Assembly (NCBI RefSeq): GCF_963676685.1
Contig: NC_092347.1
Coordinates: forward strand, 61,814,001 to 61,878,000
Source of the DNA: Mytilus edulis
Taxonomy: Eukaryota
Direction: 5' to 3'
DNA: 64,000 nucleotides
The translations under genes were made by a program, and so were the position numbers. This document shows, piece after piece, positions 72 to 56,198 of this stretch (the first letter of the stretch is position 1; each line of letters begins with the position of its first letter). The notes below the pieces were generated by a model. The model did no database searches, was not told the DNA's origin, and worked only from the letters and a program-made list of their open reading frames with translations.

Positions 72-945
72 TTGGCATTGCACAAGGTCATGTTTTTCCT
101 CAACTGTTTATAACGTCTTTTCACTAATTTAAATCCATTGGATGTTGGATGTGAACTGATTGATTATTAAGTCTAAGATGCATGTTTTTTATTATTAGTT
201 GATGGGATTTGTATTTGTATCCATCTGATGAGTTAAGCTTTTTTTCAACTGATTTTTATAGTTTGTTCTTATTTTGTACTACCTGTAGCTGCTACACAAC
301 TGTCCCAGGTTAGGGGTTGGTTGTGATCCCACTAACCTGTTTAACCCCACCACATTCTGTAAGTATTGTCCTGAGTCAGGAGCCTTTAATTCAGTGGTAA
401 TGTGTATTGATGTTTTTTGTTCATTTTTTTGGACATAGATTAGGCCCTTAGTTTTCTCATTTGAGTTGTTTTCTATTTTAAAGCTGAATATGATGTACAT
501 TGCAGGGTTCTCGCTAAAGATTTTTGAAGGCGAGTCCAGGAACTCGTCATTTTTGGCCATGATGAGTCCAACAGCAATAAGAAAATATGCAATATAAAGT
601 AATATTTTAGTCTCCATTTCCTAACAGAGCAATGAAATGACATTAGATTCAGATCACTTTTAAACTTTTGCTATAACATGATGATCTTTGTGTTTTAACT
701 GTGTTCAGTTTATACCAAATATTTCAATCTTGATGCTTCTGTGATGTTTTGAAAATGGTGAGTCCAGACAGATTTTTATGAGTCCAGGACTCATGGACTC
801 GCCTTAGTGAGAACCCTGCATTGTATGGGCTTTGCTCATGGTTGAAGGCCGTACAGTGACCAATAGTTGTCATTTCAGTTTCTTTCCGTCTCTTTAGGAG
901 AGTTGTCTCATTAGCAATCATACCATATCTTCTTTTTTTATATTG
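72..945 (+). mobile_element. 3' fragment of a PLE-related repeat (degenerate SECIS-like and twister-like modules), interrupted by a MITE
   Basis: TTGGCATTGCACAAGGTCATG aligns with the RT element 3' region (TTGGCATGACACGGGTTATG). Also carries TTTAACCCC..GTCAGGAGCC and the terminus GTTGTCTCATTAGCAATCATACCATATC. Confidence 0.7.
503..818. mobile_element. MITE with CAG termini and 5-bp TSD
   Basis: TIR CAGGGTTCTCGCTAA / TTAGTGAGAACCCTG, flanked by CATTG on both sides. Confidence 0.8.
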
Positions 946-4094: not shown

Positions 4095-4760
4095 CATTGC
4101 ACAAGGTTATGTTTTTCTCTGACTGTTAATGACATCATTACACGGAATCCATAGGATGTGTACTGATTGATATATTAGTCCCCTATACATGATTTGTTTT
4201 AGCTGTTATCAGCTTTGAACTAGCTGTCAGTAACTGTGAGTACTCTCAGATCTGTACTTAAAGGTTTTTGTTGTTGTTAGTGATGAGGGATGAATATATA
4301 CCATGCCACATCCTGTCTGTATTTTTGTTTGGTGTTTTTCTTTGTATCCATCTGACCAGTTGAGCCTTTTTCCATTTGATTTTTATAGTTTGTTCTTATG
4401 TTGTGCTGTTACACCATTGTCCCAGGTTAGGGGCAGGTTGAGCGCTTACAAATATGTAACCCACCACACATTATTTATGTGCCAGTATTAAGTCTGGAGG
4501 CTGTATTTCATGGGTTGTCATTGCTTCAAGTCAGTTACCCGGTATATTTGATTTTCCTATATTGTTTATTTATAAATTAGGCTGTTGTTTTTTTTCAATT
4601 AAAGTTTCATTTTTTCATGTCAGGGCATTTTATAGCTGACTATACATTATGTTTTTTTTCCTCATTGATGAAGGCTTTGTTGTTTCCTATAGTAACTTAC
4701 ATCCACTTTATTTGAACTCTGGTGGATAGTTGTCTCATTGGCAATCATACCACATCTAAT
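4095..4760 (+). mobile_element. PLE-related 3' fragment, same family as 72-945
   Basis: Collinear with 72-945 and 14880-15200; retains ATGAC..AA..TGAT at 4129-4167. Confidence 0.7.
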
Positions 4761-7700: not shown

Positions 7701-8414
7701 AAAATTTCACATCAAAGTTAATTAAACTACACCAACTCCCTTTTGAAGACAACTACTATCTGTAAGCCAAGAACCATATTGCTAAGATGGTAAGGTGATC
7801 TGGGTATATCTCTTTAGGTCAACTTTAAACAGTAAATCAATCCTTTTGACAAAATTTTGGGATAACAAGCTTATTTTTTCACTTAAATTTCAATAAAAAA
7901 GGGATTTGCTATGAACTTTTATCCAATATTTTGCCAATAGTCATATGAAGAAGTTTACAAGATCACCAGAAAGGATAATAGGGTCATTATACCAAAAAAA
8001 TATTTTTGTTGAACCGCAACAAATGCCCACCTACTGATTTATAAAAATTGGTAACTTTTTTGAATTTTCGCTGTTGTGAAAGTATAAAACATGTAGTTAA
8101 CAAAAAAACCCATTAAAACATGTGTTTGAAAAATTAACATAGAAACAACAACATTATTGCCATTTTTCATTTACAACATATAACAAACATAACTTTTAAC
8201 ATACAGATTTTGACAAAGTTTCAAAATTTCCAAGACTTTGATGGATTTCTACTGCAATAACCTATTTGGGTTAACAAAATCATCTAGTACAATTAATACT
8301 TTGTGAAGTTAGGAATAAACAGTAAGAAAAACTGACAATATATATTCCACTCTATAAAAAGCAAAAGGGTATTTACTACATGCATTTTTATTTCAATGGA
8401 CACTAAGATGCATC

Positions 8415-8532
8415 TAGTCCAGATTACTCTGACGTCCAACAACTGTTTTGCCAGACAAGCTGGGGCCGTGGGACCCACGGTACCAGCTTGTCTGGCAAAA
8501 CAGCCGTTGAACGTCAGAGTAATCTCAGACTA
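8415..8532. mobile_element. 118-bp hairpin MITE with 9-bp TSD
   Basis: Near-perfect fold-back with TAG..CTA ends, flanked by AGATGCATC at 8406-8414 and 8533-8541. Confidence 0.8.
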
Positions 8533-13800: not shown

Positions 13801-16800
13801 CCTTGTCTTTATCCTTTAATAAATAAGATTAGAAAATTATATAATATGAAATTCTTAAATTCATCATAATAAAAATCCATTTATTGGTTTTAAACTATAT
13901 ACTGTAACTTTTAATCATTGAAAGTGTTCATTTCATGATAAAAACTTCCACAACTACCATTATATAATAAGTAGGATTAAGAAATTCCTGTTCATGTTGA
14001 AGTAGACTATTTATGGTCAAAATTATAATACTCAGTTTAACTTTTATCCTGCTGCAGTTTTTGTATTTATAACTCATCTCTATACATTCCATATATAAAC
14101 TATATCGCTCCTATCTGTTTTTGTTAAAACAGGGGGAATTGCTAACTAAAATTTTTAATTCTGTCTAAAACTCAGATTATATCTTCTTCTTAAGAATGTA
14201 GATTATGAAGTTTTAAACAGTAATAAATAATGATTAGAGTGTATGACTTTCATGAAAATCTACGCTTTATGTATGTTTGTCAGGGGTGGATCCAGCCATT
14301 TTAAAAAAGGGGGGGTTCCAACCCCCGGAACCCCCCTGGATCCGCCAATGTTTGTTATGAAAATCTAAGTATAAATGATGATTTTGACAAATTTCTTATG
14401 GTCTGCTGTAAACTCTTGAGTAACTGTTTTGCATTCCTTTTTTACCACTCTTTTATTGTTATCATTTACAGTTATATATGTACATTTACAAGTTAACCAC
14501 AGTTCACAAAATGTAGAAAATCCAAATATTAAATACATATAGCTGTAATAGTAAAATATCTGGTTATAAATGATATATGAAACATTTATAAGACACTAAC
14601 TTATATGGCTGCTATTGTGTATTTTACTTGTAATGTCAGATAATATTAACATTTAATTGTTTCAAAATTTTCAGGAAGGGCCTTTTATAGCCCACTATCA
14701 TTATGGGTTTTGCTCATTGTTTTGAGTATAAGTTTCTCTTTGTTGAAAGCCATAGAGTAGTTTATAATTGCTTACTACATTTTAACTCTGGTAGACAGTT
14801 TTCTTATACTCAATTATACCACATCTCCTCATTTTCATAAACAGGGTGCTGGTGTATAATAATTATACTATACAGACTTTCCCGCTAACATGTTTAACCC
14901 CGCCACATTATTTATGTATGTGCCTGACCCATGTCAGGAGCCTGTAATTCAGAGGTTGTCGTTTGTTTATGTGTTACATATTTGTTTTTCGTTCATTTTT
15001 TTACAAAAATAAGGCCGTTAGTTTTCTCGTTTGAATTGTTTTACATTGTCTTATCGGGGCCTTTTATAGCTGACTATGCGGTATGGCCTTTGCTCATTGT
15101 TGAAGGCCGTACGGTGACCTATAGTTGTTAATGTCTGTGTCATTTTGGTCTTTTGTGGATAGTTGTCTCATTGGCAATCATACCACATCTTCTTTTTTAT
15201 ATTTGCCATATCATTTGTTTCTTTTTGTTTATTGAATATGAATCAAAAGCAAGTTGTACGTATAATTCAATTGACTTTTTACATTTTTGTAACATGCATT
15301 TTTTTTGCATTCAATGACCAACAGATATTTAAGCAGTATCTATAAACAAGATGTCCTACAGATCATTATAAGACTGTGACATGCTCAGTGGGTATAATAA
15401 AGTTTCAAAGTATAGCTACAGTGGAACAGGAAGTGACTTCCCTGCAAATCTGAAACCATATGAAACAAATCTTTTCCCATTTAAATCTAATTTCTATATA
15501 ATATATATGAATACCTTAGAGCTTGACTTCTTTTCTTTCTTTGCTGAATCAGTTGTGATTGGCTGGCCAAATAATTCTGTAAACTGTTTGCCATTGCCAC
15601 TGTTGTCAAGACTAGCACCATTGCCAACTAATGTCTGTGAAAAGGCAAGTAAGTATATAAATAGCAAGATAATCATATAATAATGATAATTCAAAAGGTC
15701 ATGTAGAAATGCCTAACCTATATGCATCATAACTAATAAACATGCTACCAATGGGTCCATTGAAAAACAGACTATACTTTGGTAAATAGAGAGTTGGATG
15801 TGTATTGATTGATATTTCAATCTAAGATACGTGATTTTTTATTATCTGTTATTAACTCTGACTTAGCTGTCAGTTAATGTGAGTACTGTCAGATTTGTAC
15901 TAAGTTAGTGTCTTTATTTTTGTCTTTAGGGATGAGGGATGAACATACTATCTGCCAATTTCTGTCTGTGTTTTTGTTTGTTTTTATCTGATGAGTTAAG
16001 ACCTTTTTATTCGATTTTTGCTGTTACACCACTCTCCCGTGTAAGGACACACAGAAACATGCTTAACTCCGCTACATTCTTTGTGTGCCTGTCCCAAGTC
16101 AGGAGCCAGCTGTTGTTCAGTGGTTGACTTTGGTTCATGTCTGTCATATTCAGAGGCCCCCCGTTTTCTGCGAAAATTTGGTTGTTTATATAGGGAATCA
16201 CTGAAGCATGACCGGAGCGGCCCCCCTCTTAGGTAGTCAACAGGCCCCCACTTATGAAAATTTCTGGATCCGCCACTGATATTTGTTTTTCATAAATTTT
16301 CAATAGTTTGCTTTGTTTCATATTTTTCATATCAGGTCTTTCTATGGGGGACTATACAGTATGGTTTGTTCTCATTGTTGAAGGATTAAGGTTGTTTATT
16401 AATGCTTACATCCACTTCATTTATTTTTGATGGATATAGTTGTTTCAATAACAATCATATCACATCTCCATATTTTTATATGGTACATGTACATGTAACT
16501 GCACAGTTAAAGATTTTTGTCTATTTTGTTTAAGTCCATTAGGTCTTTAAGGGGACATTCAATCTCACAAGTCATAAAACAAACTGACAATACCATGGAT
16601 GAAAAATAAAAAGACAAACAAACAAACAACAGTACACAAAACACAACTTGGAAAACAAATGACTTAGCATCCCAACACCACCAATAACTGGGGGTGCTTT
16701 GGAAGGGCAAATAAAGTATGTACAATGTACTTACACCTCCTGATTTCAGTAGTTTTTTCTTAAATTCATCTGTTGGATTCTGGAATGTTAATTTCTCACA

Positions 16801-21925: not shown

Positions 21926-22720
21926 TTCCTTTTTAGAAATAACCACGCTTAAATAAAGGTGTGAATACTATATGTTTTATTTATCAAACCAAAAATATAA
22001 TCAAATGTTAAACTGAAACACACACAGGGAGGGTTACTAACACAAAACGCTTCATTTTTTCCCTCTAGCTTAGTAGATGCCCCCTCCCCCCCCCCCCCCC
22101 CCCCCACACACACGGCCGGGTGGAATTTACTCAGTTTCAAGGGCTGGTTTGAGATGAGTAACCTGTGGTCTAACTTGGACTGTCAGAATCAGAATGTGTG
22201 TCGGTTTCATAGTTGTCAAACTTGGATAATGTATTTCAATCAGTAGTATTATAATCCATTATACTGCTAGTAAACATTTCTGAAAGTTTGAACATGTTTA
22301 CTTGGCCGCGATGATAGAAAATTAACTTGTAGTTTAATAGAATTTTAGATAATGTTAGATATACGGAAAAGTTTTTCATGTTGAACATGTTAAAGACAGG
22401 TACTATCATTATAAGAACAGTATAAGTTTTTGATAACAATTTAAAAAAATTCCGACGAAGTGTTATAACCTCGAGGTTATAACACTATAAAGATCACTAA
22501 AGTTGAGTTCTGTATTCAGAAAACCTCAGTAGAGACAGAACTTAGTTATTTTAAAAATGTTTTGAACTCACAAAACAATATATATAGTACAGTGAACAAT
22601 ATATGTAGTAAATATCATGTGTAAGTGAAAGTTGTGATCCGCGCAAACTTTTCAGTTGCATTACTGATATAAACATAATATTAGTTGCTTTGACTGGACT
22701 GGGACCATGAACAGAATCAT

Positions 22721-23045
22721 GTATTAGTCCCAAAAATGAACTCATGTATTAGTCCCACAAATGAACTCATGTATTAGTCCCACAAATTAACTCATGTATT
22801 AGTCCCACAAATGAACTCATTTTGAATGTATTAGTCACATAAATGAACTCATTTTGAATGTATTAGTCCCACAAATGAACTCGTGTATTAGTCCCACAAA
22901 TGAACTCATGTATTAGTCCCACAAATGAACTCATGTATTAGTCCCACAAATGAACTCATTTTGAATGTATTAGTCACATAAATGAACTCATTTTGAATGT
23001 ATTAGTCCCACAAATGAACTCATGTATTAGTCCCAGGAATGAACT
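22721..23045. repeat. 25-bp minisatellite, 12 units
   Basis: GTATTAGTCCCACAAATGAACTCAT, with TTTGAAT inserted after four of the units. Confidence 0.92.
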
Positions 23046-24945: not shown

Positions 24946-25990
24946 CTTTTTGTACTCAAAGATTATAACTCAGCATCATGATTGGAATGGTCTGCAGCAG
25001 ATTATTTTTTAGTTATCAAACCACCAAGACAAATTCAAAGACACCTCAAATTAGCTTATATTATCATTGTGAATAAATCGAAAAGAACGCATATTTTTAT
25101 GCAATAATTGAACCAATTCTTCAGAGAAAAAACGGTTGAAATCTTTTAACGGGTTGTTATTAATATACATATATAAAAATTAGAAGACTTGGTATGATTG
25201 CCAATGAAACAACTCTCTAAATTACATAGAAAGTTATCAACTATAGGTCACTGTACGGCCTTCAAAAATAAGCAGAATCTATACCGCATATATATAGTCA
25301 GCAATAAATGGGTCTGAAACAACAAACGAAAAACAATCCAAACGAAAAACTGATTCGTGAACAAAACAATGAAAGAAAAACAATTATGATATAAATAAAG
25401 AAACGACACTGACCACTGAATTACAGGCTCCTGCGACTCTTTCCACAAACTCTCCAACGATTAAAATTGATCGTAAGATAATAGAATTGCTGATTTATCA
25501 GACTAACTCACGAATGATCACAGATATATTTCACTTATCGTAACCACAATTCCGTTTTCTTTTTGATTTACCGAATCTGGCTATGATTCGGATTACTTAC
25601 ATGATCTAGTGCCAACATAGGATTAGAATCTGCTTACTCTTTCCAGAGCACATAAGTTCAATCCCAGTTTTTGATAGGGTTCGTCTTGCGGAATCTTCAG
25701 TGTCGTCGTTATTTTTGGCTGTATATGGTGTTGTTTGTTTTTATTAGACTTGGTTTGTTCTCTCTCTTGTTCAACCCAGGAACATATATATTAGATATAC
25801 TGTTCCCAGTTCTACCACGGCAAATATTTTCATTTAGTTTTTTTTTCTTTCCTGGAGTGAATATCTATATAATATATTCTAATCCCAGGCAGAAACCCCT
25901 AGCCGTATTGGTCACAACTTTTTGGATCTTTTGTTCCTCAGTGCTCTGCAACTTTGTACTTGTTTTGGCTTTCGAACTTTTTTCATCTGA

Positions 25991-26034
25991 GTGTCACTGG
26001 TTAGTCTTGTGTGGACGAAAAGCGTGTCTGGCGT
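25991..26034 (+). ncRNA. Degenerate minimal type-I hammerhead ribozyme
   Basis: Stem I GTGTCA/TGGCGT, core CTGGTTA (for CTGATGA), stem II GTC/GAC, GAAA, short stem III and GTC site. Core mutations make this copy likely inactive. Confidence 0.55.
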
Positions 26035-26158
26035 ATTAAAATGGTACCTTTTGATAGCTATTATTCGGCGTGTGTTTCTCTGTCCTATGTGTTCTCCCAT
26101 TTATTTGTTTTGTGGTTCTGTCATGTAATGTTGTTATTTCAATGTTATATTTAACATT

Positions 26159-26250
26159 GCCATAAAAGCGGGAGGTTTGGCATGCCACAAAACAAGGTGC
26201 AACCCATTATTTTTTTCTTAAAATGTCCTGTACCAAGTCAGGAAAATGGC
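26159..26250 (+). ncRNA. Second-family twister-P5-like fold (degenerate)
   Basis: P5 GCCAT/ATGGC; GAGGT with loop TACCAAGT (GGT/ACC replacing GGG/CCC); P4 CCTG/CAGG. Confidence 0.5.
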
Positions 26251-27278
26251 CATTGTTATATTATAGTTCGTATCAGTGTGTGTTACATTTTAATGTTGTG
26301 TATCTGTTGTGTCATAGTTCTCCTCTTATGTTTGATGCGTTTCCCCCAGTTTAAGTTTGTTACCCGGATTTGGGTTTTTTTTCTCAATCGACTTATGAAT
26401 TTCGAACAGCGATATACTACTGTTGCTTTTATTTCTATTTCCCATATCAAACAGTTTTTGTCCATCAGGGATTTTGAGGTCTCTTTGATTTCTCTGTTGA
26501 ATTTATCCACAACGATTTCGGACTACAAGTAATTTATTACTTGAAATATGGTATGGGCACTTGTTTATCTTAATCACCGTATGTTGACCCCTAGGCGTAT
26601 TTCTGGATTTTTGTTTTGTTATGTTGTTGTTTCATTGACTTATATATATATATATTTTTTTTTAATATATATAATATATGTATATTTCTGCCTATGTGAA
26701 GTGAGAACTGCAAATTATACCTTGTCCATCGGATTTCTTATGATTAAGAAATACCAGGCGTTAATTTAACATACTTTAAAAGAAGCAAGATATTTTTATA
26801 AGCGGGGCGAGTTGGCAGAACTTTATACAGTGGGGTTTAAACCTTTTTCATTAATAAGTGAGTTGTCAGACTGATTGTTCAATTTGATTTTACACTTTTA
26901 GGTGGGGCGAGTTTCGGTAAACAAGAGTGCAGATTTTTTATAAAGTGGCGATATAGTATAGGCCGACTGGCAGGTGGGGCGAGTTGACATTGTTTGATAT
27001 CTACTCATCGTGTTCGGGGGTGTATACATCATATAGTAATATATAAAGTATATTATAATGGTTGTGTGGCGTTCTAAAATAGATTTTATGAATTGTAAAT
27101 GTTTTTTCGTCAAATCTAAAACAGCTGGGATGTAAAATAGTTATCCCATTCGGACTCCGCCATCGGGATGATCTTACACTGACACACCGCGTCCTTGTGG
27201 GATAACTATTAATTGACCCCTAGGCCTTTTTCTGGATTTTTGTTTTGTTATGTTGTTTTTTCATTGACTTATATATAT

Positions 27279-34488: not shown

Positions 34489-37400
34489 ACAAAAATGTAT
34501 TGTCTTATAGTGTACATATTTGTAAATAAATCGTTTCACATAAATATTTGTGAGAAAATAATAACGTGTGTTTGTTTGTTTTTCGACAAACCAAAGACAA
34601 AAATAATTTGTACATATACTGCAAGAAAAAATTGTCAAAAACGTCTATTAATGAAAACCTGTCGTAAAAAGAAGATAGAAATACCATACACATTCATGCT
34701 AAAATTTGCCCATGCAACTGAACAGAGTTGGAACAATTTTTTGAGTTCTTGGTATAAAGTCATCATTCTTAGGGTTAAATTTCTGCAGGTAGAATCTAAC
34801 TTTATTTCAATACTGAATCCCATATATTAATATGAAAATGGATTATCAAGTTTATTATAAGCTTTTCAAGTTCGCCAAAATGTGATATCTATATTCCTCC
34901 TGTAATCGTTTTCTTCTGATTCTTTTGAGATGGAAGAGGGTAACATTATTTTCGACAGAATTTGGGTCCCTAAATTCTGAATTCTTTAATTTTTTCACAC
35001 ATTTTTCCGGCTCTATTCTTTATATTTTTGTTCACTGTTCTCTATTTTTTTTTTTTCATACATTTTTTCTATATTCTTTATTTGTCGATCCAATTTTCCG
35101 TAGTGTTGGTCCATAATTCTCTTTTCTGTAAACCCTATTTTGACCCTCAGAATACCCCATATTCTTTCTTTTTCTATTATTTATCATATAAGGGTTTTTA
35201 AGGGCTAGCCTGGCGGACTCAAGCTAATACTTTGTAGATAGGTTCGGGCGTAATGCAAACTTCTGCCGAGCAGCGAGCCAGGGTCACAGGCTAGAGGAGG
35301 GCTATTAAGTTTTCATGGACATTGTTTGTATGTTTGTCTCAAGCTATTTTTATTTTATTTACACTGATATTCATAACAAACAACTTAAATTAACAGCAAC
35401 GGATACATATCACTGAAAGGATTAGAATTTTAGTGCATATATACTCAATTCTATATATAGTATTGCAGTAACTAAATAAAAAAAATGATTTTATCGTGAC
35501 TAAAAGCATTAATTCTTCCCCACGCATTCAAGTGATTTTAATAATATCCTCATTTATAATTTAAAATATTAGATTGTGCTACAAATATCTATATGTGTAA
35601 GCTAATTGATTAATAAGTACACCAATAATTAGAATAACTTGCACATTACAAGACTGTCGACCCAGCATTTTAAGCAGACGTTTTAATTTGTTCTTAACAG
35701 TGAATTTTCTAGGGAAAGATCGTATATCAATTTGATATTTTGTAACACAGAAATCAGTCTTCTCTTGATGGCGTCCAATTTTTTTTTCTTCAAAATGTTG
35801 ATTTAAAACTCAACACTTCGGACGTATGGTGTAATAGCTTCCTTGAAAGCAGCAACTGCATATCTATCAAGGAATCATGATAGGAGATGTAAGCTCGGCA
35901 ATATCGTATCAACTGGGAGATATATATTGCATATGCAGGCGGTACTGGAGTGTTACTATATACGTAGAAATGTAAAGTTCACTATTTGAAACTGAAATCC
36001 TTCCTCTCTGTTGTCGTAAAGTTATGTGCTCAACTGACCCTTGTTTTTAATTTCAAGATGTAAGACATAATACGAGGAGTACTGAACAGTATCTGGTGTA
36101 TCCTTTATTTTAAAATCGAGGATGGGAAAATGCGTTCAACATATTCACCTTACTTTGAATCATTTAGTGAAAGGACATTCCAAAATACCCAATTTTACTA
36201 TCCATACCATAAGAAACAAATTATGGATAGTAAAATTGGGTATTTTCTCTGAGTCGTTTAAATCACTCGAAACTAGGTGAGACATTCGCAGTAGTGGTAG
36301 ATAAAATTATGTAGCATAAATAAAGAACATTGAATGTTTTAATAAAAAAAAAATATATATCTGTATCATATACCCAAGCGCCTGTGGTCATGACAATTCG
36401 TGTACTATACGTGAAACAAATGAAAGGGGAAACCCAACGGCTTGATTTAAAACCAAAATAATAAACTAAAAACAATTAATTATAACTTAATTAAGAGACA
36501 GCAAACAACGACAGCCACAGAGTTACAGGTTCCGGAATTAGGACAGGCACATATTGAATGTGCCTGAATTATACATGTTTGTGTTTTTCTGTGTTTTGGG
36601 CAAACAATAAAGGCGGAGAATAACTGTATATTAGAAAAATAGTAAACATAAAAATTATTGATTTTATATTCTTGACGAAAATGTTGCAGAGTGTCCACTT
36701 AGACCCTAGGTGAGCGACACATGCCCGTTTAGAGCCTTTAGTTCGTCACTCCAGACCAGATCATAATGAAAGTACTGTTTGCCAAAATCTTTATAGATTC
36801 TAACACAATGTTATGTAACACAAAATACAGGTCATATTTAATTAAAATTTTGTTTTTTATTATCTTTTTTTTCTGTAAACGGCTGACTATCTGATAATTA
36901 GAGCATTCAGTCACAGGTGCCATTCTCACATATTGGACTCATGTCCTAACTTACACCTAGTTTGAATCTGGATGTTCACTTTATTTTATTTCAGGTATTC
37001 GGTTTAGTATGATTCTTTTAGTTGAGATCAATGATACAAACAGGACCAGGAACAATGTTACTTACATCTTGGGCTTGCGAAGATGTGTTACAATAAACCT
37101 GAACGAATTTGATAAGGTCCTTTATATACACTCGTTTACGGGACGTAAATGTTATATCGATGTCTCACTCTATCCGTCCCTTTGCAGTTTATCAGAAGTG
37201 TTGCATACAAATATTCAGCTAAAACGACTTGAAATATGCAAATTTTGCGCTCAGTGTCTTCGTCAAACTAGTTACTATCTTATATTTGAAAAGTTCTATA
37301 TTACGTGACGTGACAGGGGCGGATCCAGCGATTAAAAAAAAGGGGGGTTCCTAACCCAGGACAAATGGGGGTTACAACTACATGTCCCTATTCAAATGCA

Positions 37401-52184: not shown

Positions 52185-53920
52185 AGTTGTTGTTTCTCTA
52201 TAATCTGACTGTCTTGTATTTTTTTTTTTATTTATTTTTTTTTTTTTTTTTTTAGCACTCAGATTGTTGTTGACTTTATAGAAAAATAACGATCATATGT
52301 TAAACAATAGGACACAATTTAACAAAACAAAATATAAAAAGTAGCGGGTTATAACAGATTTGAGTTTTATAGTTTAGTTGTGATTACATATGACGTTACG
52401 CACGGTATTGCGTCGCAAGACGTAACATGTATAATTGACAAATGTGACGCCATACTAACTTTGACATTTTGTTATCAAGAGCGGAGAACCTACTCAATCG
52501 ATCTTTATCAAATAAATACAATAAGCTGAAGAAATGTTTCAAAATTTATCATGTATAAGGCAATTAAGTAAGGATCGTTTTTATTTTCTGATCTGTAATG
52601 AGATGAAAACAAATGCAAATTTTTCAATTTTATTTTGGATAGGATACATAGCAACCTTTAAAAAAATCTTGTTCCCGGAGGGACACATGAAAACAAAAAT
52701 ATAGCTAAACATTTTTTTGAAAAATTGAACATAAACACTTATGGTATTTATTTCATAAAATTCGGTCATATAATAATTCTGCAATATTTCTTTTTATAAG
52801 GATTTTAGTTGAAATGTTTTTTTTTAGATTGAACTCACTTTTGTCCAATATTTGTATGTGTGACTGTCTGTGCGAGTTTTCAGACTATTTCTCTATCTTT
52901 CTAGCACTGATGGTTTTATTTTACAAATAGGTATTTATTTAATTCTTTAAAAATTATAAGACCATTGTACCTCGGATTCTAATCGGTTTCTAATCTATAA
53001 GGGTGTTTTAGATTTGCGTAAAAACTTTTGTCCATAAGAAATTATCCCTCGGCCCATCCCCCCTTTTCCCCTATGTCTATAAACGGTTTATTCCTAATGT
53101 TGGTGTGTTTTTCTAATCTGGGTGTTATTTTAATTCTGTAGACCAATTTGGAATGACCATTTCCCGGCATTATTTTAACTGCCTAAACAGTTCGTAAATA
53201 GTGTGTATTTGTATAAAAGACGCCACTGTGCAGAAACGTCAAAATGACGCCCTTGGACATAATGGCTAGACATAGGGATGCTGCTTTCCGAAAAAAATTG
53301 TACGGTCATCATGTTTTTATCCATTTGTATGAACTTATAGTTTGTATCTTATAAATATGTTAATCTATGTAATTGTAGTACCTCCGAATATATTTATGGA
53401 CCCATTTCCCATGTTATATAAACAGGAGATCTTAACATCGTTCAAGACCGAGAGTTAAAATCATTCCTCAGTAAAGGACCTAAATATCGTCCCCCGTCAA
53501 TTATTAATTGGAATGAGTGTCGTAATATCATCCACGACTCACTCCATACTTACTGTATGAAATGGATAAAACGGGAAAAAGCTGACAAAAAATCTTTGGA
53601 CTCTTTTTTTTAATTCAGTAATGAAGATAGTTGATATACGTATTCAACATTTTAAAGAACATTTTACTATTAACAATAACCACAAAAAACCTATTTCTCG
53701 TATCAAACATAAACTAAAAGAACTAGCCAAGAAATTTGTTTTTGTCCCGGCCGAAAAAGCTGCTAATAATATTATTATTGTTTGACGTAAATTTTACATT
53801 GAGGTTCTGAAAAAAGAAATCACCAATTCACCAACATTCCAACTGACTCCATTTTCAGAAAACGACATCTGTAACAAACATAAACTTTTAGCTACCGCTT
53901 TACAAGCAGAGCCAAATACA

Positions 53921-55228
53921 ATGAAAGTCCCAACTATGTACTGGCTTCCGGAGCTACACAAAACACCTTACAAATATAGATTTATTTCGTCTTCAAGCCA
54001 TTGTTCCACTACTAAATTGTCTATTCTTCTTACCAGCACACTTGGTACAATTAAAAACCTGATAATAAATTGTTCAAATAAGGCCTTCGAAAATAGTGGA
54101 ATTAATTACTTTTTGAGTGTCAAGAACTCGTTGGAAGTACTTGATAAATTGCATGCTTATATTGGTGATTTTAAATCTGTTCAAAGTTTTGATTTTTCTA
54201 CCCTGTATACCACATTGCCTCACATTCTCATTAAGAAAAAATTCACACACCTAATTAAATGGGCATTTAAAAAGTCAGAATGTGAATATATATGTTCAAA
54301 CTCTTTTAGGTCATTTTTTAGTAGCCATAAACAAAAAAACTATGTCAATTGGACATACTTTGATACTATATATGCCCTTGAATTTTTACTAGATAACATT
54401 TTTGTTCGCTTTGGGGATTCCGTATATCGTCAGATTATCGGAATTCCAATGGGGACTAACTGTGCACCACTTATTGCGGACCTGTTTTTGTATTGCTATG
54501 AGTTACAATTTATGACAAAAATAAGCAAAGACCCATCGAAACAACATCTGATAAACAAATTTAATAATACTTTTAGATATTTGGATGATATTTTGGCTCT
54601 CAATAATGACGACTTCAGTATGTATATTAAAGAAATTTATCCCGTTGAACTAACTTTAAATAACGCTAATACTAACAATGACTACTGCCCTTTCCTCGAT
54701 CTTGATATCTATATCACTAACGGAAAGCTGAATACTAAAATTTATGATAAAAGAGATGATTTTTCATTTCCTATCGTTAATTATCCATTTTTAGATGGTG
54801 ACGTTCCCTTGTCACCATCTTACGGTGTTTATATATCTCAACTTGTACGATTCGATCGTGTATGTAACAATGTTTTAGATTTTAACGAGAGAAATTTATG
54901 TATTACTGAAAAATTATTACACCAGGGTTTTCGATATCACAAACTAGTCAAAACATTTACTAAATTTTATCATCGGTATAAGGACATCATTCGTAAATAT
55001 AGCTCAACATGCAGACTTCTTATACGTTCAGGTATTTCACATCCAATTTTTTATGGAAATATTCTTTATAAAGCACAAAGATGCGAGTATTCACCTCAAA
55101 AACTAACAAAACCTTTGAATAGACTTATTAAGAAGGGATATAGTTACGATACTGTTGTCAGGTCATTAAAGATTGCATATTTTGGCGTTAATATTGATTC
55201 ACTTATAGGGTCTTTGCACCGGAACTAA
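53921..55228 (+). CDS. Reverse transcriptase of the Penelope-like element (C-terminal part of a decayed ORF)
   Basis: 435-aa ORF with complete RT core. The frame stays open upstream to ~53612 apart from one TGA at 53783. Confidence 0.8.
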   Translation: MKVPTMYWLPELHKTPYKYRFISSSSHCSTTKLSILLTSTLGTIKNLIINCSNKAFENSGINYFLSVKNSLEVLDKLHAYIGDFKSVQSFDFSTLYTTLPHILIKKKFTHLIKWAFKKSECEYICSNSFRSFFSSHKQKNYVNWTYFDTIYALEFLLDNIFVRFGDSVYRQIIGIPMGTNCAPLIADLFLYCYELQFMTKISKDPSKQHLINKFNNTFRYLDDILALNNDDFSMYIKEIYPVELTLNNANTNNDYCPFLDLDIYITNGKLNTKIYDKRDDFSFPIVNYPFLDGDVPLSPSYGVYISQLVRFDRVCNNVLDFNERNLCITEKLLHQGFRYHKLVKTFTKFYHRYKDIIRKYSSTCRLLIRSGISHPIFYGNILYKAQRCEYSPQKLTKPLNRLIKKGYSYDTVVRSLKIAYFGVNIDSLIGSLHRN

Positions 55229-55282
55229 ACACATTTATTCAAAAACCAGTTGTTGGCATGACACGGGTTATGTTCTTCTCAT

Positions 55283-55343
55283 ATATGTTATGATGGTATG
55301 ATACTAAACCCCTAACGGGAAGGATTGTGCCTGATGTTCATAT
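55283..55343 (+). promoter_or_regulatory. Type-2 SECIS element
   Basis: Helix I ATATG/CATAT; ATGA (55290) .. TGAT (55332) quartet; helix II GGTATGAT/ATTGTGCC; unpaired AAA (55306-55308); apical CCC/GGG ministem; 55 nt after the RT stop. Confidence 0.85.
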
Positions 55344-55541
55344 GATGAAATCATAATCTTTCAGTCAGTTTAATTGAAGTCTGGAGCTGGCATGTCAGTT
55401 AACTGCTAGTAGTCTGTTGTTATTTATGTATTATTGTCATTTTGTTTATTTTCTTTGGTTACATCTTCCGACATCAGACTCGGACTTCTCTTGAACTGAA
55501 TTTTAATGTGCATATTGTTATGCGTTTACTTTTCTACATTG

Positions 55542-55630
55542 GCTAGAGATATAGGGGGAGGGTTAAGATCTCACAAACATGTTTAACCCCGCCGCATTTT
55601 TGCGCCTGTCCCAAGTCAGGAGCCTCTGGC
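55542..55630 (+). ncRNA. Type-P5 (circularly permuted) twister-ribozyme-like RNA
   Basis: P5 GCTAGAG/CTCTGGC; P2 GGGG/CCCC; L1 GAGGG + TAA; P3 GCA/TGC; P4 CCTG/CAGG with loop TCCCAAGT able to form both pseudoknots. P1 is poorly paired. Confidence 0.7.
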
Positions 55631-56198
55631 TAGTATATATTTGTTTAGGGGCCAGTTGAAGGACGCCTCCGGGTGCGGGAATTTCTCGCTACATTTAAGA
55701 CCTGTTGGTGACCTTCTGCTGTTGTTTTTTTCTATGGTCGGGTTGTTGTCTCTTTGGCACATTCCCCATTTCCATTCTCAGTTTTAGTTTTGTATTATAA
55801 ATGCACATTTATTATTTATACAACATTTTTCACCTAAGGAATGGACAAAAATTACGTTTGGACATAGTGGCTAGACATTCAATTTTTTTAAATTCTGCTT
55901 CAAGAAAAAGTTTTTTTTTTACATTTGAAACTTTGGAAATGCTTATCTTTTCCAGAACTTTCTATTGGGTATAGTTTTAATATGATTTTATTACTTTATA
56001 GGGATAATAATAAAACTTAAATGTTGATAAACACATTAAGACAGGTTCCTCTGCTGATTATTTCGTTGAAGGCTTGCTTCAAATTTCAGCCAATACCAAA
56101 AACGGGTATGATGTTATAATATAAATCTAGTAGGAAGCTGATGTACTAAATTTCGCAGATTTTATGTGCAAAATTACAACGGAACATAGACAAATGCA

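Follow-up and report, generated by a model that had tools for sequence, protein, structure and literature searches.

A twister-like RNA motif with palindromes in place of P1 in the 3′ region of Naiad Penelope-like retroelements of Mytilus edulis

We analysed a window of 64,000 nucleotides of Mytilus edulis DNA (contig NC_092347.1, positions 61,814,001 to 61,878,000 of the forward strand) and found in it a 5′-truncated copy of a Penelope-like retroelement, in which a reverse-transcriptase (RT) frame is followed by a SECIS element and then by a twister-like RNA motif (Table 1). The motif begins 314 nt beyond the stop codon of a 435-aa frame with RT motifs in this copy, and a direct read-out of the sequence gave exactly the letters by which it was first described.

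Table 1. Features of the analysed window and families of the twister-like module
Feature	Position in window	Strand	Remarks
5′-truncated Naiad-clade Penelope-like element copy, family A	53367..55791	+	aligns with longer copy L031 from 53367
Reverse-transcriptase frame	53621..55228	+	carries YLDD; in-frame UGA at 53786..53788
SECIS, 3′ UTR	55280..55344	+	Rfam SECIS_1, 32.3 bits, E 9.4e-05, just below the gathering threshold of 35
Whole twister-like motif	55542..55630	+	P5(5′)-L2-P2(3′)-GAGGG-palindromes-UAA-P2(5′)-GC-P3-P4/L4-P5(3′), the type-P5 order
P5 5′ strand GCUAGAG	55542..55548	+	partner CUCUGGC, 55624..55630
Spacer AUAUA	between P5 5′ strand and P2 GGGG	+	
P2 3′ strand GGGG	55554..55557	+	agrees with Rfam twister consensus and published S. 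mansoni twisters
Loop L1 GAGGG	55558..55562	+	agrees with Rfam twister consensus and published S. mansoni twisters
T1 strand GGG	55560..55562	+	partner L4 CCC, 55610..55612
Palindrome 1	55564..55573	+	UAAGAUCUCA in window copy, UGAGAUCUCA in most copies; occupies the place of the P1 3′ strand
Palindrome 2, AACAUGUU (DNA AACATGTT)	55576..55583	+	immediately 5′ of the predicted cleavage-site U
L1 UAA	55584..55586	+	predicted scissile bond U55584/A55585, placed by twister consensus
P2 5′ strand CCCC	55587..55590	+	Rfam alignment
L2 GC	55591..55592	+	Rfam alignment
P3 hairpin C GCA / TTTT / TGC G	55593..55604	+	Rfam alignment
P4 CCUG/CAGG	55605..55608 with 55617..55620	+	whole hairpin 55605..55620
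Loop L4 UCCCAAGU (DNA TCCCAAGT)	55609..55616	+	CCC 55610..55612 is the T1 partner, GU 55615..55616 the T2 partner
Spacer AG	between P4 and P5 3′ strand	+	
P5 3′ strand CUCUGGC	55624..55630	+	partner GCUAGAG, 55542..55548
Family D relative	26147..26265	+	GAGGU with UACCAAGU (UACC; T1 compensated), palindrome GGCAUGCC
Decayed family-B/C-type copy	4409..4515	+	nhmmer match and sequence
Further decayed copies	292..398; 14880..14968; 16048..16135; 36506..36583	- (36506..36583)	nhmmer matches
Family A, window element			P3 GCA/UGC; P5 GGCUAGAG/CUCUGGCC
Family B, SINE-like repeats and divergent Naiad-lineage 3′ UTRs			P3 ACAU/AUGU; P5 CCAGG/CCUG plus ACCACUG/CAGUGGU
Family D, non-coding repeat, >1,600 candidate matches			P3 AUUUU/AAAAU; P5 GCCAU/AUGGC, extendable

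The host had been called a Penelope-like element in the first-pass annotation of this DNA. That assignment held, and comparisons made on real copies, not on a consensus, refined it to the Naiad clade and the selenoprotein type. The RT, which Pfam does not recognise, has 4,018 homologues, none with a Pfam RT match. Its DKA-type motif reads PAEKAANN in the window copy and PADKAANN in other copies and homologues; the change from DKG to DKA is diagnostic of Naiads (PMC8557442), and the window element has a Penelope-like RT that bears it. Among 29 compared copies, we observed a common 3′ end about 230 nt beyond the motif and scattered 5′ ends, which is the pattern of a 5′-truncating retroelement. 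Together with the copy number of this family (family A; about 7,900–8,500), the variable 5′ truncation and common 3′ end agree with what is expected of a Naiad. Upstream of the 435-aa part, the RT frame runs on through an in-frame UGA (53786–53788), and relatives such as the homologue P0002 have Cys at that place; the window element therefore combines a UGA at a Cys codon with a 3′ SECIS, as in the selenoprotein subtype. Clam and spider Naiads have been described as selenoprotein-type (PMC8557442). They share the DKA motif, the UGA at Cys and the 3′ SECIS with the window element, and both are 5′-truncating and reach very high copy number in bivalves. For the published Naiads no canonical hammerhead is reported and twisters are unmentioned (PMC8557442), whereas the window element has a twister-like module after its SECIS. 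Naiads are expected to have an N-terminal GIY-YIG endonuclease joined by a CxC linker, and no Pfam match to such a domain was found in longer homologues of up to 732 aa; the window copy and the copies compared with it are 5′-truncated. The window copy also lacks 78 nt directly after P5 (55631/55632) that are present in most copies. Four of the 29 top-scoring copies had suggested a preferred 5′ end shortly before P5; this proved to be a sampling effect and fell to about 3% in an unbiased sample.

We compared the motif with the consensus lines of two Rfam models, twister-P1 and twister-P5, and with the Schistosoma mansoni twisters in Table 1 of PMC8501958. The earlier mapping of the motif onto a twister core opened at P5 stood up to this comparison, because both loops and helix order agree with the Rfam and published twisters. 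All conserved loop nucleotides (UAA, GAGGG, GC and GUCCCAAG) are kept except for one change in L4, where the last position is U and the consensus has C, so that the first T2 pair is G·U instead of G–C. Thus UAA stands on one strand of L1 and GAGGG on the other, P2 lies beside L1 as four base pairs (GGGG/CCCC), and the P4 hairpin carries the loop GUCCCAAGC with the single C-to-U change. The consensus G–C pair of P4 is U–A in the window motif. Both pseudoknots can form: T1 joins GGG of L1 with CCC of L4 (94.8% of alignment cells paired), and T2 joins GC of L2 with GC of L4 (96.2%). T2 consists of G·U plus C–G in the window motif and of A–U plus C–G in family D; the individual pairs are assigned after twister crystal structures. 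P5 is present in the minimum free energy (MFE) fold, with duplex z-scores of −2.7 to −3.6. The MFE of the window motif (−33.8 kcal/mol) belongs to a fold with a competing hairpin of GGGUUGAG with UUUAACCC, compared with −28.7 kcal/mol when the twister helices are folded in nested form and the pseudoknots are left aside.

The main departure from known twisters is at P1. The nucleotides that follow GAGGG cannot pair with those that precede UAA, in the sequence or in the fold, which confirms the earlier remark that P1 is not Watson–Crick paired and that two short palindromes sit in its place. The stretch from GAGGG to UAA is 21 nt long and contains both palindromes; in the window copy the first, with AGATCT at 55566–55571, has one mismatch. 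Type-P5 twisters (RF02684, clan CL00120) have the same order of parts, the closing P5, a P4 hairpin with the same loop and the same conserved nucleotides. They have an 8-bp P1 hairpin where the window motif has the 21 nt with two palindromes, and the window motif differs further by an added P3 hairpin and by the U at the end of L4.

Searching with the Rfam twister models, which had been proposed as a check, did not return the motif: at the gathering threshold there was no twister match in the entire window. The best permissive match was to twister-P1, at 18.3 bits compared with the 67.2 required, and twister-P5 scored lower. The twister-P1 alignment was good from UAA through P4 and then broke down on the permuted 3′ half. 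Of the 58 positions of the twister-P5 model, 16 lie in the 8-bp P1 hairpin between GAGGG and UAA, and the model has no P3; a canonical metagenomic type-P5 twister, used as a reference, scored 50.7 bits with it. The window motif thus falls short of formal Rfam twister membership because the P1 hairpin is absent. A genome-wide search with RF02684 gave no match among the 79 scored of 31,236 candidates and was uninformative. We judge the motif to be very probably a genuine member of the twister fold by homology.

A loose core pattern (GAGGG..TAA NNNN GCC..TCCCAAG) had a single match in the window, compared with none in 100 shuffled versions of it. A variant of this pattern without the commonest P2 letter matched 528 sites in the 1.37-Gb genome and one in the reversed control, and a 14-mer of the motif occurred 7,934 times in the genome and not at all in the control. 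These counts bear on whether the motif resembles the twister consensus by chance within a repeat, as its absence from the Rfam calls might suggest. In metagenome contigs the loose pattern did yield 120 loci, nearly all of them fortuitous and without P2 or P4 pairing, in which they differ from the sites described here; one locus was the canonical type-P5 twister used as a reference. Chance would have to account for the excess over both shuffled and reversed sequence and for four helices and two pseudoknots in the correct order, with covariation; the counts and the covariation effectively refute it, and we regard it as extremely improbable. One metagenome contig (L187, 83–1560) contains three spaced GAGGG/UAA/GCC motifs with a CGG-UCCCAAG-UCCG hairpin and no P2 pairing.

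The module was found 116–353 nt 3′ of the RT stop, on the same strand, in RT lineages that are 96%, 84–88% and about 43–51% identical to the window RT. Two loci of divergent lineage (L053 and L062) have the same arrangement of RT and then module. When their 3′ UTRs were compared with that of family A, the twister region was the sole alignable island in L053, and L062 gave a weak 61% alignment over about 650 nt. The P5 helices of families A, B and D are formed by three sequences unrelated to one another. In family D, ACC replaces GCC, which makes T2 A–U, and CAA replaces UAA; P2 pairs at only two of its four positions. The module is, on balance, likely to be a fixed part of the 3′ UTR (pseudo-LTR region) of Naiad elements and of the short, non-autonomous repeats to which Naiad tails have given rise. 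The first-pass annotation had pointed to related copies in the window with compensatory changes. Such copies exist, and the differences in P3, P5 and T1 hold at the level of families; the copies at 4409–4515, 14880–14968 and 16048–16135 are decayed single copies whose own changes carry little weight.

Covariation was scored on an alignment of 65 distinct real copies, for P2, T1, T2, P4, three pairs of P3 and the two palindromes. Standard pairs occupied 85.4% of cells, compared with 28–50% when the partners were slid by 1–3 columns. The covariation score was 0.196, compared with 0.118 after shuffling (reached in 0 of 500 shuffles) and at most 0.052 after sliding, a score in which kin copies form the rows and a few evolutionary events are counted many times. 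The third pair of T1 was G–C in 48 rows and U–A in 12, where family D had changed on both sides; this double change represents one evolutionary event. The second pair of P3 was G–C in 27 rows and A–U in 16, and T2 went from G·U (49 rows) to A–U (15 rows). P2 and P4 did not vary between families in the 65 copies and hence showed no covariation. The covariation that had been called for as a check is therefore present between families in P3, P5 and T1, where changes are compensated, while T2 stays paired; it is absent from P2 and P4. The copy at 4409–4515 had hinted at covariation in P4. For genomic copies whose third P4 pair had changed from U to A on the 5′ side, a matching 3′ change was present in only 5 of 100, and for those changed from U to C in only 2 of 100, so the hint is explained by neutral decay, and compensations in single copies mostly reflect decay because so few changed P4 copies are matched. 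Reads and contigs show four high-frequency variants inside the motif, at the equivalents of 55543, 55549, 55574 and 55597; each of them either lies in a loop or preserves pairing. The contigs extended the comparison across species to three closely related organisms.

Palindrome 1 stays palindromic with other letters across families (GGGAUCCC, GAGCGCUC, GGCAUGCC and GGUACC), with pair counts of 32 A–U and 26 G–C at one pair and 48 G–C and 12 C–G at another in the 65-copy alignment. The form in family C is GAGCGCUC, and palindrome 2 of family D, in the same place, is AACC-A-GGUU. Both palindromes between GAGGG and UAA (55564–55583 and its equivalents in L034–L082) were palindromic while their letters differed, as in GAGAUCUC and the forms just listed. 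Self-complementarity of the loop is more than a hairpin requires, which suggests that two molecules pair or that the sequence has a role at the level of DNA. One possible explanation is that the palindromes act mainly in DNA or cDNA, as hairpins or as protein sites during integration, and that the twister letters are an inherited passenger. Perfect palindromes of the AGATCT, GGATCC, AGCGCT, GCATGC and GGTACC types, together with ACATGT, do exceed what an RNA hairpin needs. We consider this explanation very unlikely; it does not account for the invariant loops or for the way in which P3, P5 and T1 change with compensation, which are features of an RNA fold.

Cleavage between U55584 and A55585 had been predicted, with a search for read starts at 55585 proposed as a check. 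We placed the raw RNA reads of one 2026 run on a typical copy (L003:1000–1900, with the predicted bond at 1555/1556) and took one fifth of the depth as the threshold for a pile of read ends. Read coverage was continuous across the predicted cut site in both orientations, and nowhere near the bond did read starts or ends accumulate to the threshold. The same raw reads contained no circular-RNA junctions. Genomic copies gave a similar picture: 14 of about 7,900 started at the predicted scissile bond, whereas control positions at distances of 4 and 8 nt gave 8 and 10. Small deletions would explain the look of most of the 14. [quoted passage not shown] The only pile in the region was at L003:1701 (about 55652 in the window, the deletion allowed for), where 80 RNA molecules start in one orientation at a depth of 389; it may mark where reads of another repeat family begin to match. 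In addition, 14 RNA reads with 8 start places join L003:1582 back to 1549 (window 55578–55611), a 34-nt duplication across the predicted cut site that is absent from the contigs of three other runs.

Twisters almost universally have P1, and cleavage without it is reported to be inefficient (PMC8501958). We lean towards the reading that the motif is a type-P5 twister in Naiad tails whose RNA cuts itself at U55584/A55585 on transcription. The element would be transcribed, often through tandem or read-through arrangements, and its RNA would fold into P2–P5 with pseudoknots T1 and T2. The folded RNA would then cut itself at the predicted bond, leaving a 2′,3′-cyclic phosphate and a 5′-OH, and the twister would take the role proposed for hammerheads in canonical Penelope-like elements. 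Because two conserved palindromes replace the canonical P1, cleavage would be expected to be slow or conditional, possibly requiring two paired RNAs, and this would agree with bulk RNA showing no strong sign of cleavage. Slow or conditional cleavage is plausible and compatible with the read and copy-end results, which lend it no support. Catalytic function itself we judge to be somewhat better than an even prospect.

A twister-derived fold could also have been kept with little or no cleavage, for recognition of the 3′ region by the RT, for dimerization driven by the palindromes or for RNA stability. The loss of P1, the conservation by covariation of the two palindromes that replace it, and the lack of a cleavage signature in RNA reads or at the 5′ ends of genomic copies are all consistent with such a fold. 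The module is moreover common to autonomous and non-autonomous elements, as are tails recognized by RTs, and family D, in spite of CAA, ACC and a weakened P2, was amplified to >1,600 candidate matches. The nucleotides of the catalytic loops are nevertheless unchanged across RT lineages that are about 50% identical, which a structural role would not obviously demand, and P1-less and truncated twisters have been reported to be catalytically competent (PMC8501958; PMC7761336). We regard a fold kept without cleavage as possible and rather doubtful. If the preferred reading of a self-cleaving twister is taken further, Naiads may carry a twister instead of a hammerhead that is active only when two element RNAs pair through the covarying palindromes. 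This version is unlikely; if true, it would mean that dimer-gated self-cleavage arose convergently, within one class of retroelements, in two unrelated ribozyme folds.

Minimal hammerheads in the pseudo-LTRs of canonical Penelope-like elements are active as dimers (Cervera & de la Pena 2014; Lunse et al. 2017, cited in PMC6765202). They share with the window motif the kind of host, the 3′ or pseudo-LTR place and a crippled helix with palindromic sequence in its stead; they belong to a different ribozyme class, and for the window motif dependence on a dimer is only hypothesized. Besides canonical Penelope-like elements, mussel retrozymes are also known to carry hammerheads (PMC6765202, PMC7229834). 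The mussel retrozymes are, like the families described here, abundant short non-coding repeats that bear a ribozyme; they are about 350–400 bp long and probably mobilized by Penelope-like elements (PMC7229834). They carry type I hammerheads and form tandem repeats and circular RNAs, whereas families B and D are dispersed and carry the twister-like module.

The first-pass annotation had also suggested an undescribed RNA-processing system. A link between twisters and retrotransposons was already known: twisters occur at the 5′ ends of RTE/Perere-3 elements, and their activity has been demonstrated (PMC8501958; PMC7761336). Like the window motif, these are twister cores in an abundant retrotransposon with a weak or variable P1, and their loops are nearly identical to those of the window motif, including GAGGG followed by UUG. 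They are type-P1 twisters at the 5′ end of the element, whereas the window motif is of type P5 and lies in a Penelope-like 3′ UTR; for RTE/Perere-3, cleavage and target-site duplications adjacent to it have been shown, whereas the window motif left no footprint in reads or copy ends. Our literature search, by Penelope, Naiad, retrozyme and bivalve, found no paper associating twisters with Penelope-like elements, although the lists of Roth et al. 2014 may include such sequences. The suggestion thus stands as to the association, and a processing system as such is still conjectural. What is new here is a type-P5 twister that bears palindromes and no P1, together with its host class and its position.

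The main interest of the motif is its bearing on whether Penelope-like elements need a ribozyme. Naiads, which dominate the Penelope-like elements of many invertebrate genomes, were described as lacking hammerheads, and this was read to mean that ribozymes are dispensable or merely parasitic (PMC8557442). A conserved twister in Naiad tails would reverse that reading. A small ribozyme would then be needed generally, whichever class supplies it, much as LINEs use either HDV-like ribozymes or twisters. The known eukaryotic twister-like motifs would grow by many thousands that are invisible to Rfam models requiring P1, and a natural P1-less, palindromic variant would offer a handle on how twisters tolerate or exploit the loss of P1.

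Elsewhere in the window, a hammerhead-like core (CUGAGUG ... GAAA) at 25985–26030 precedes the family D module by about 150 nt; it has no Rfam match at E values up to 1. Two blocks of 25-nt tandem units, ATGTATTAGTCCCACAAATGAACTC, occupy 22694–23045.
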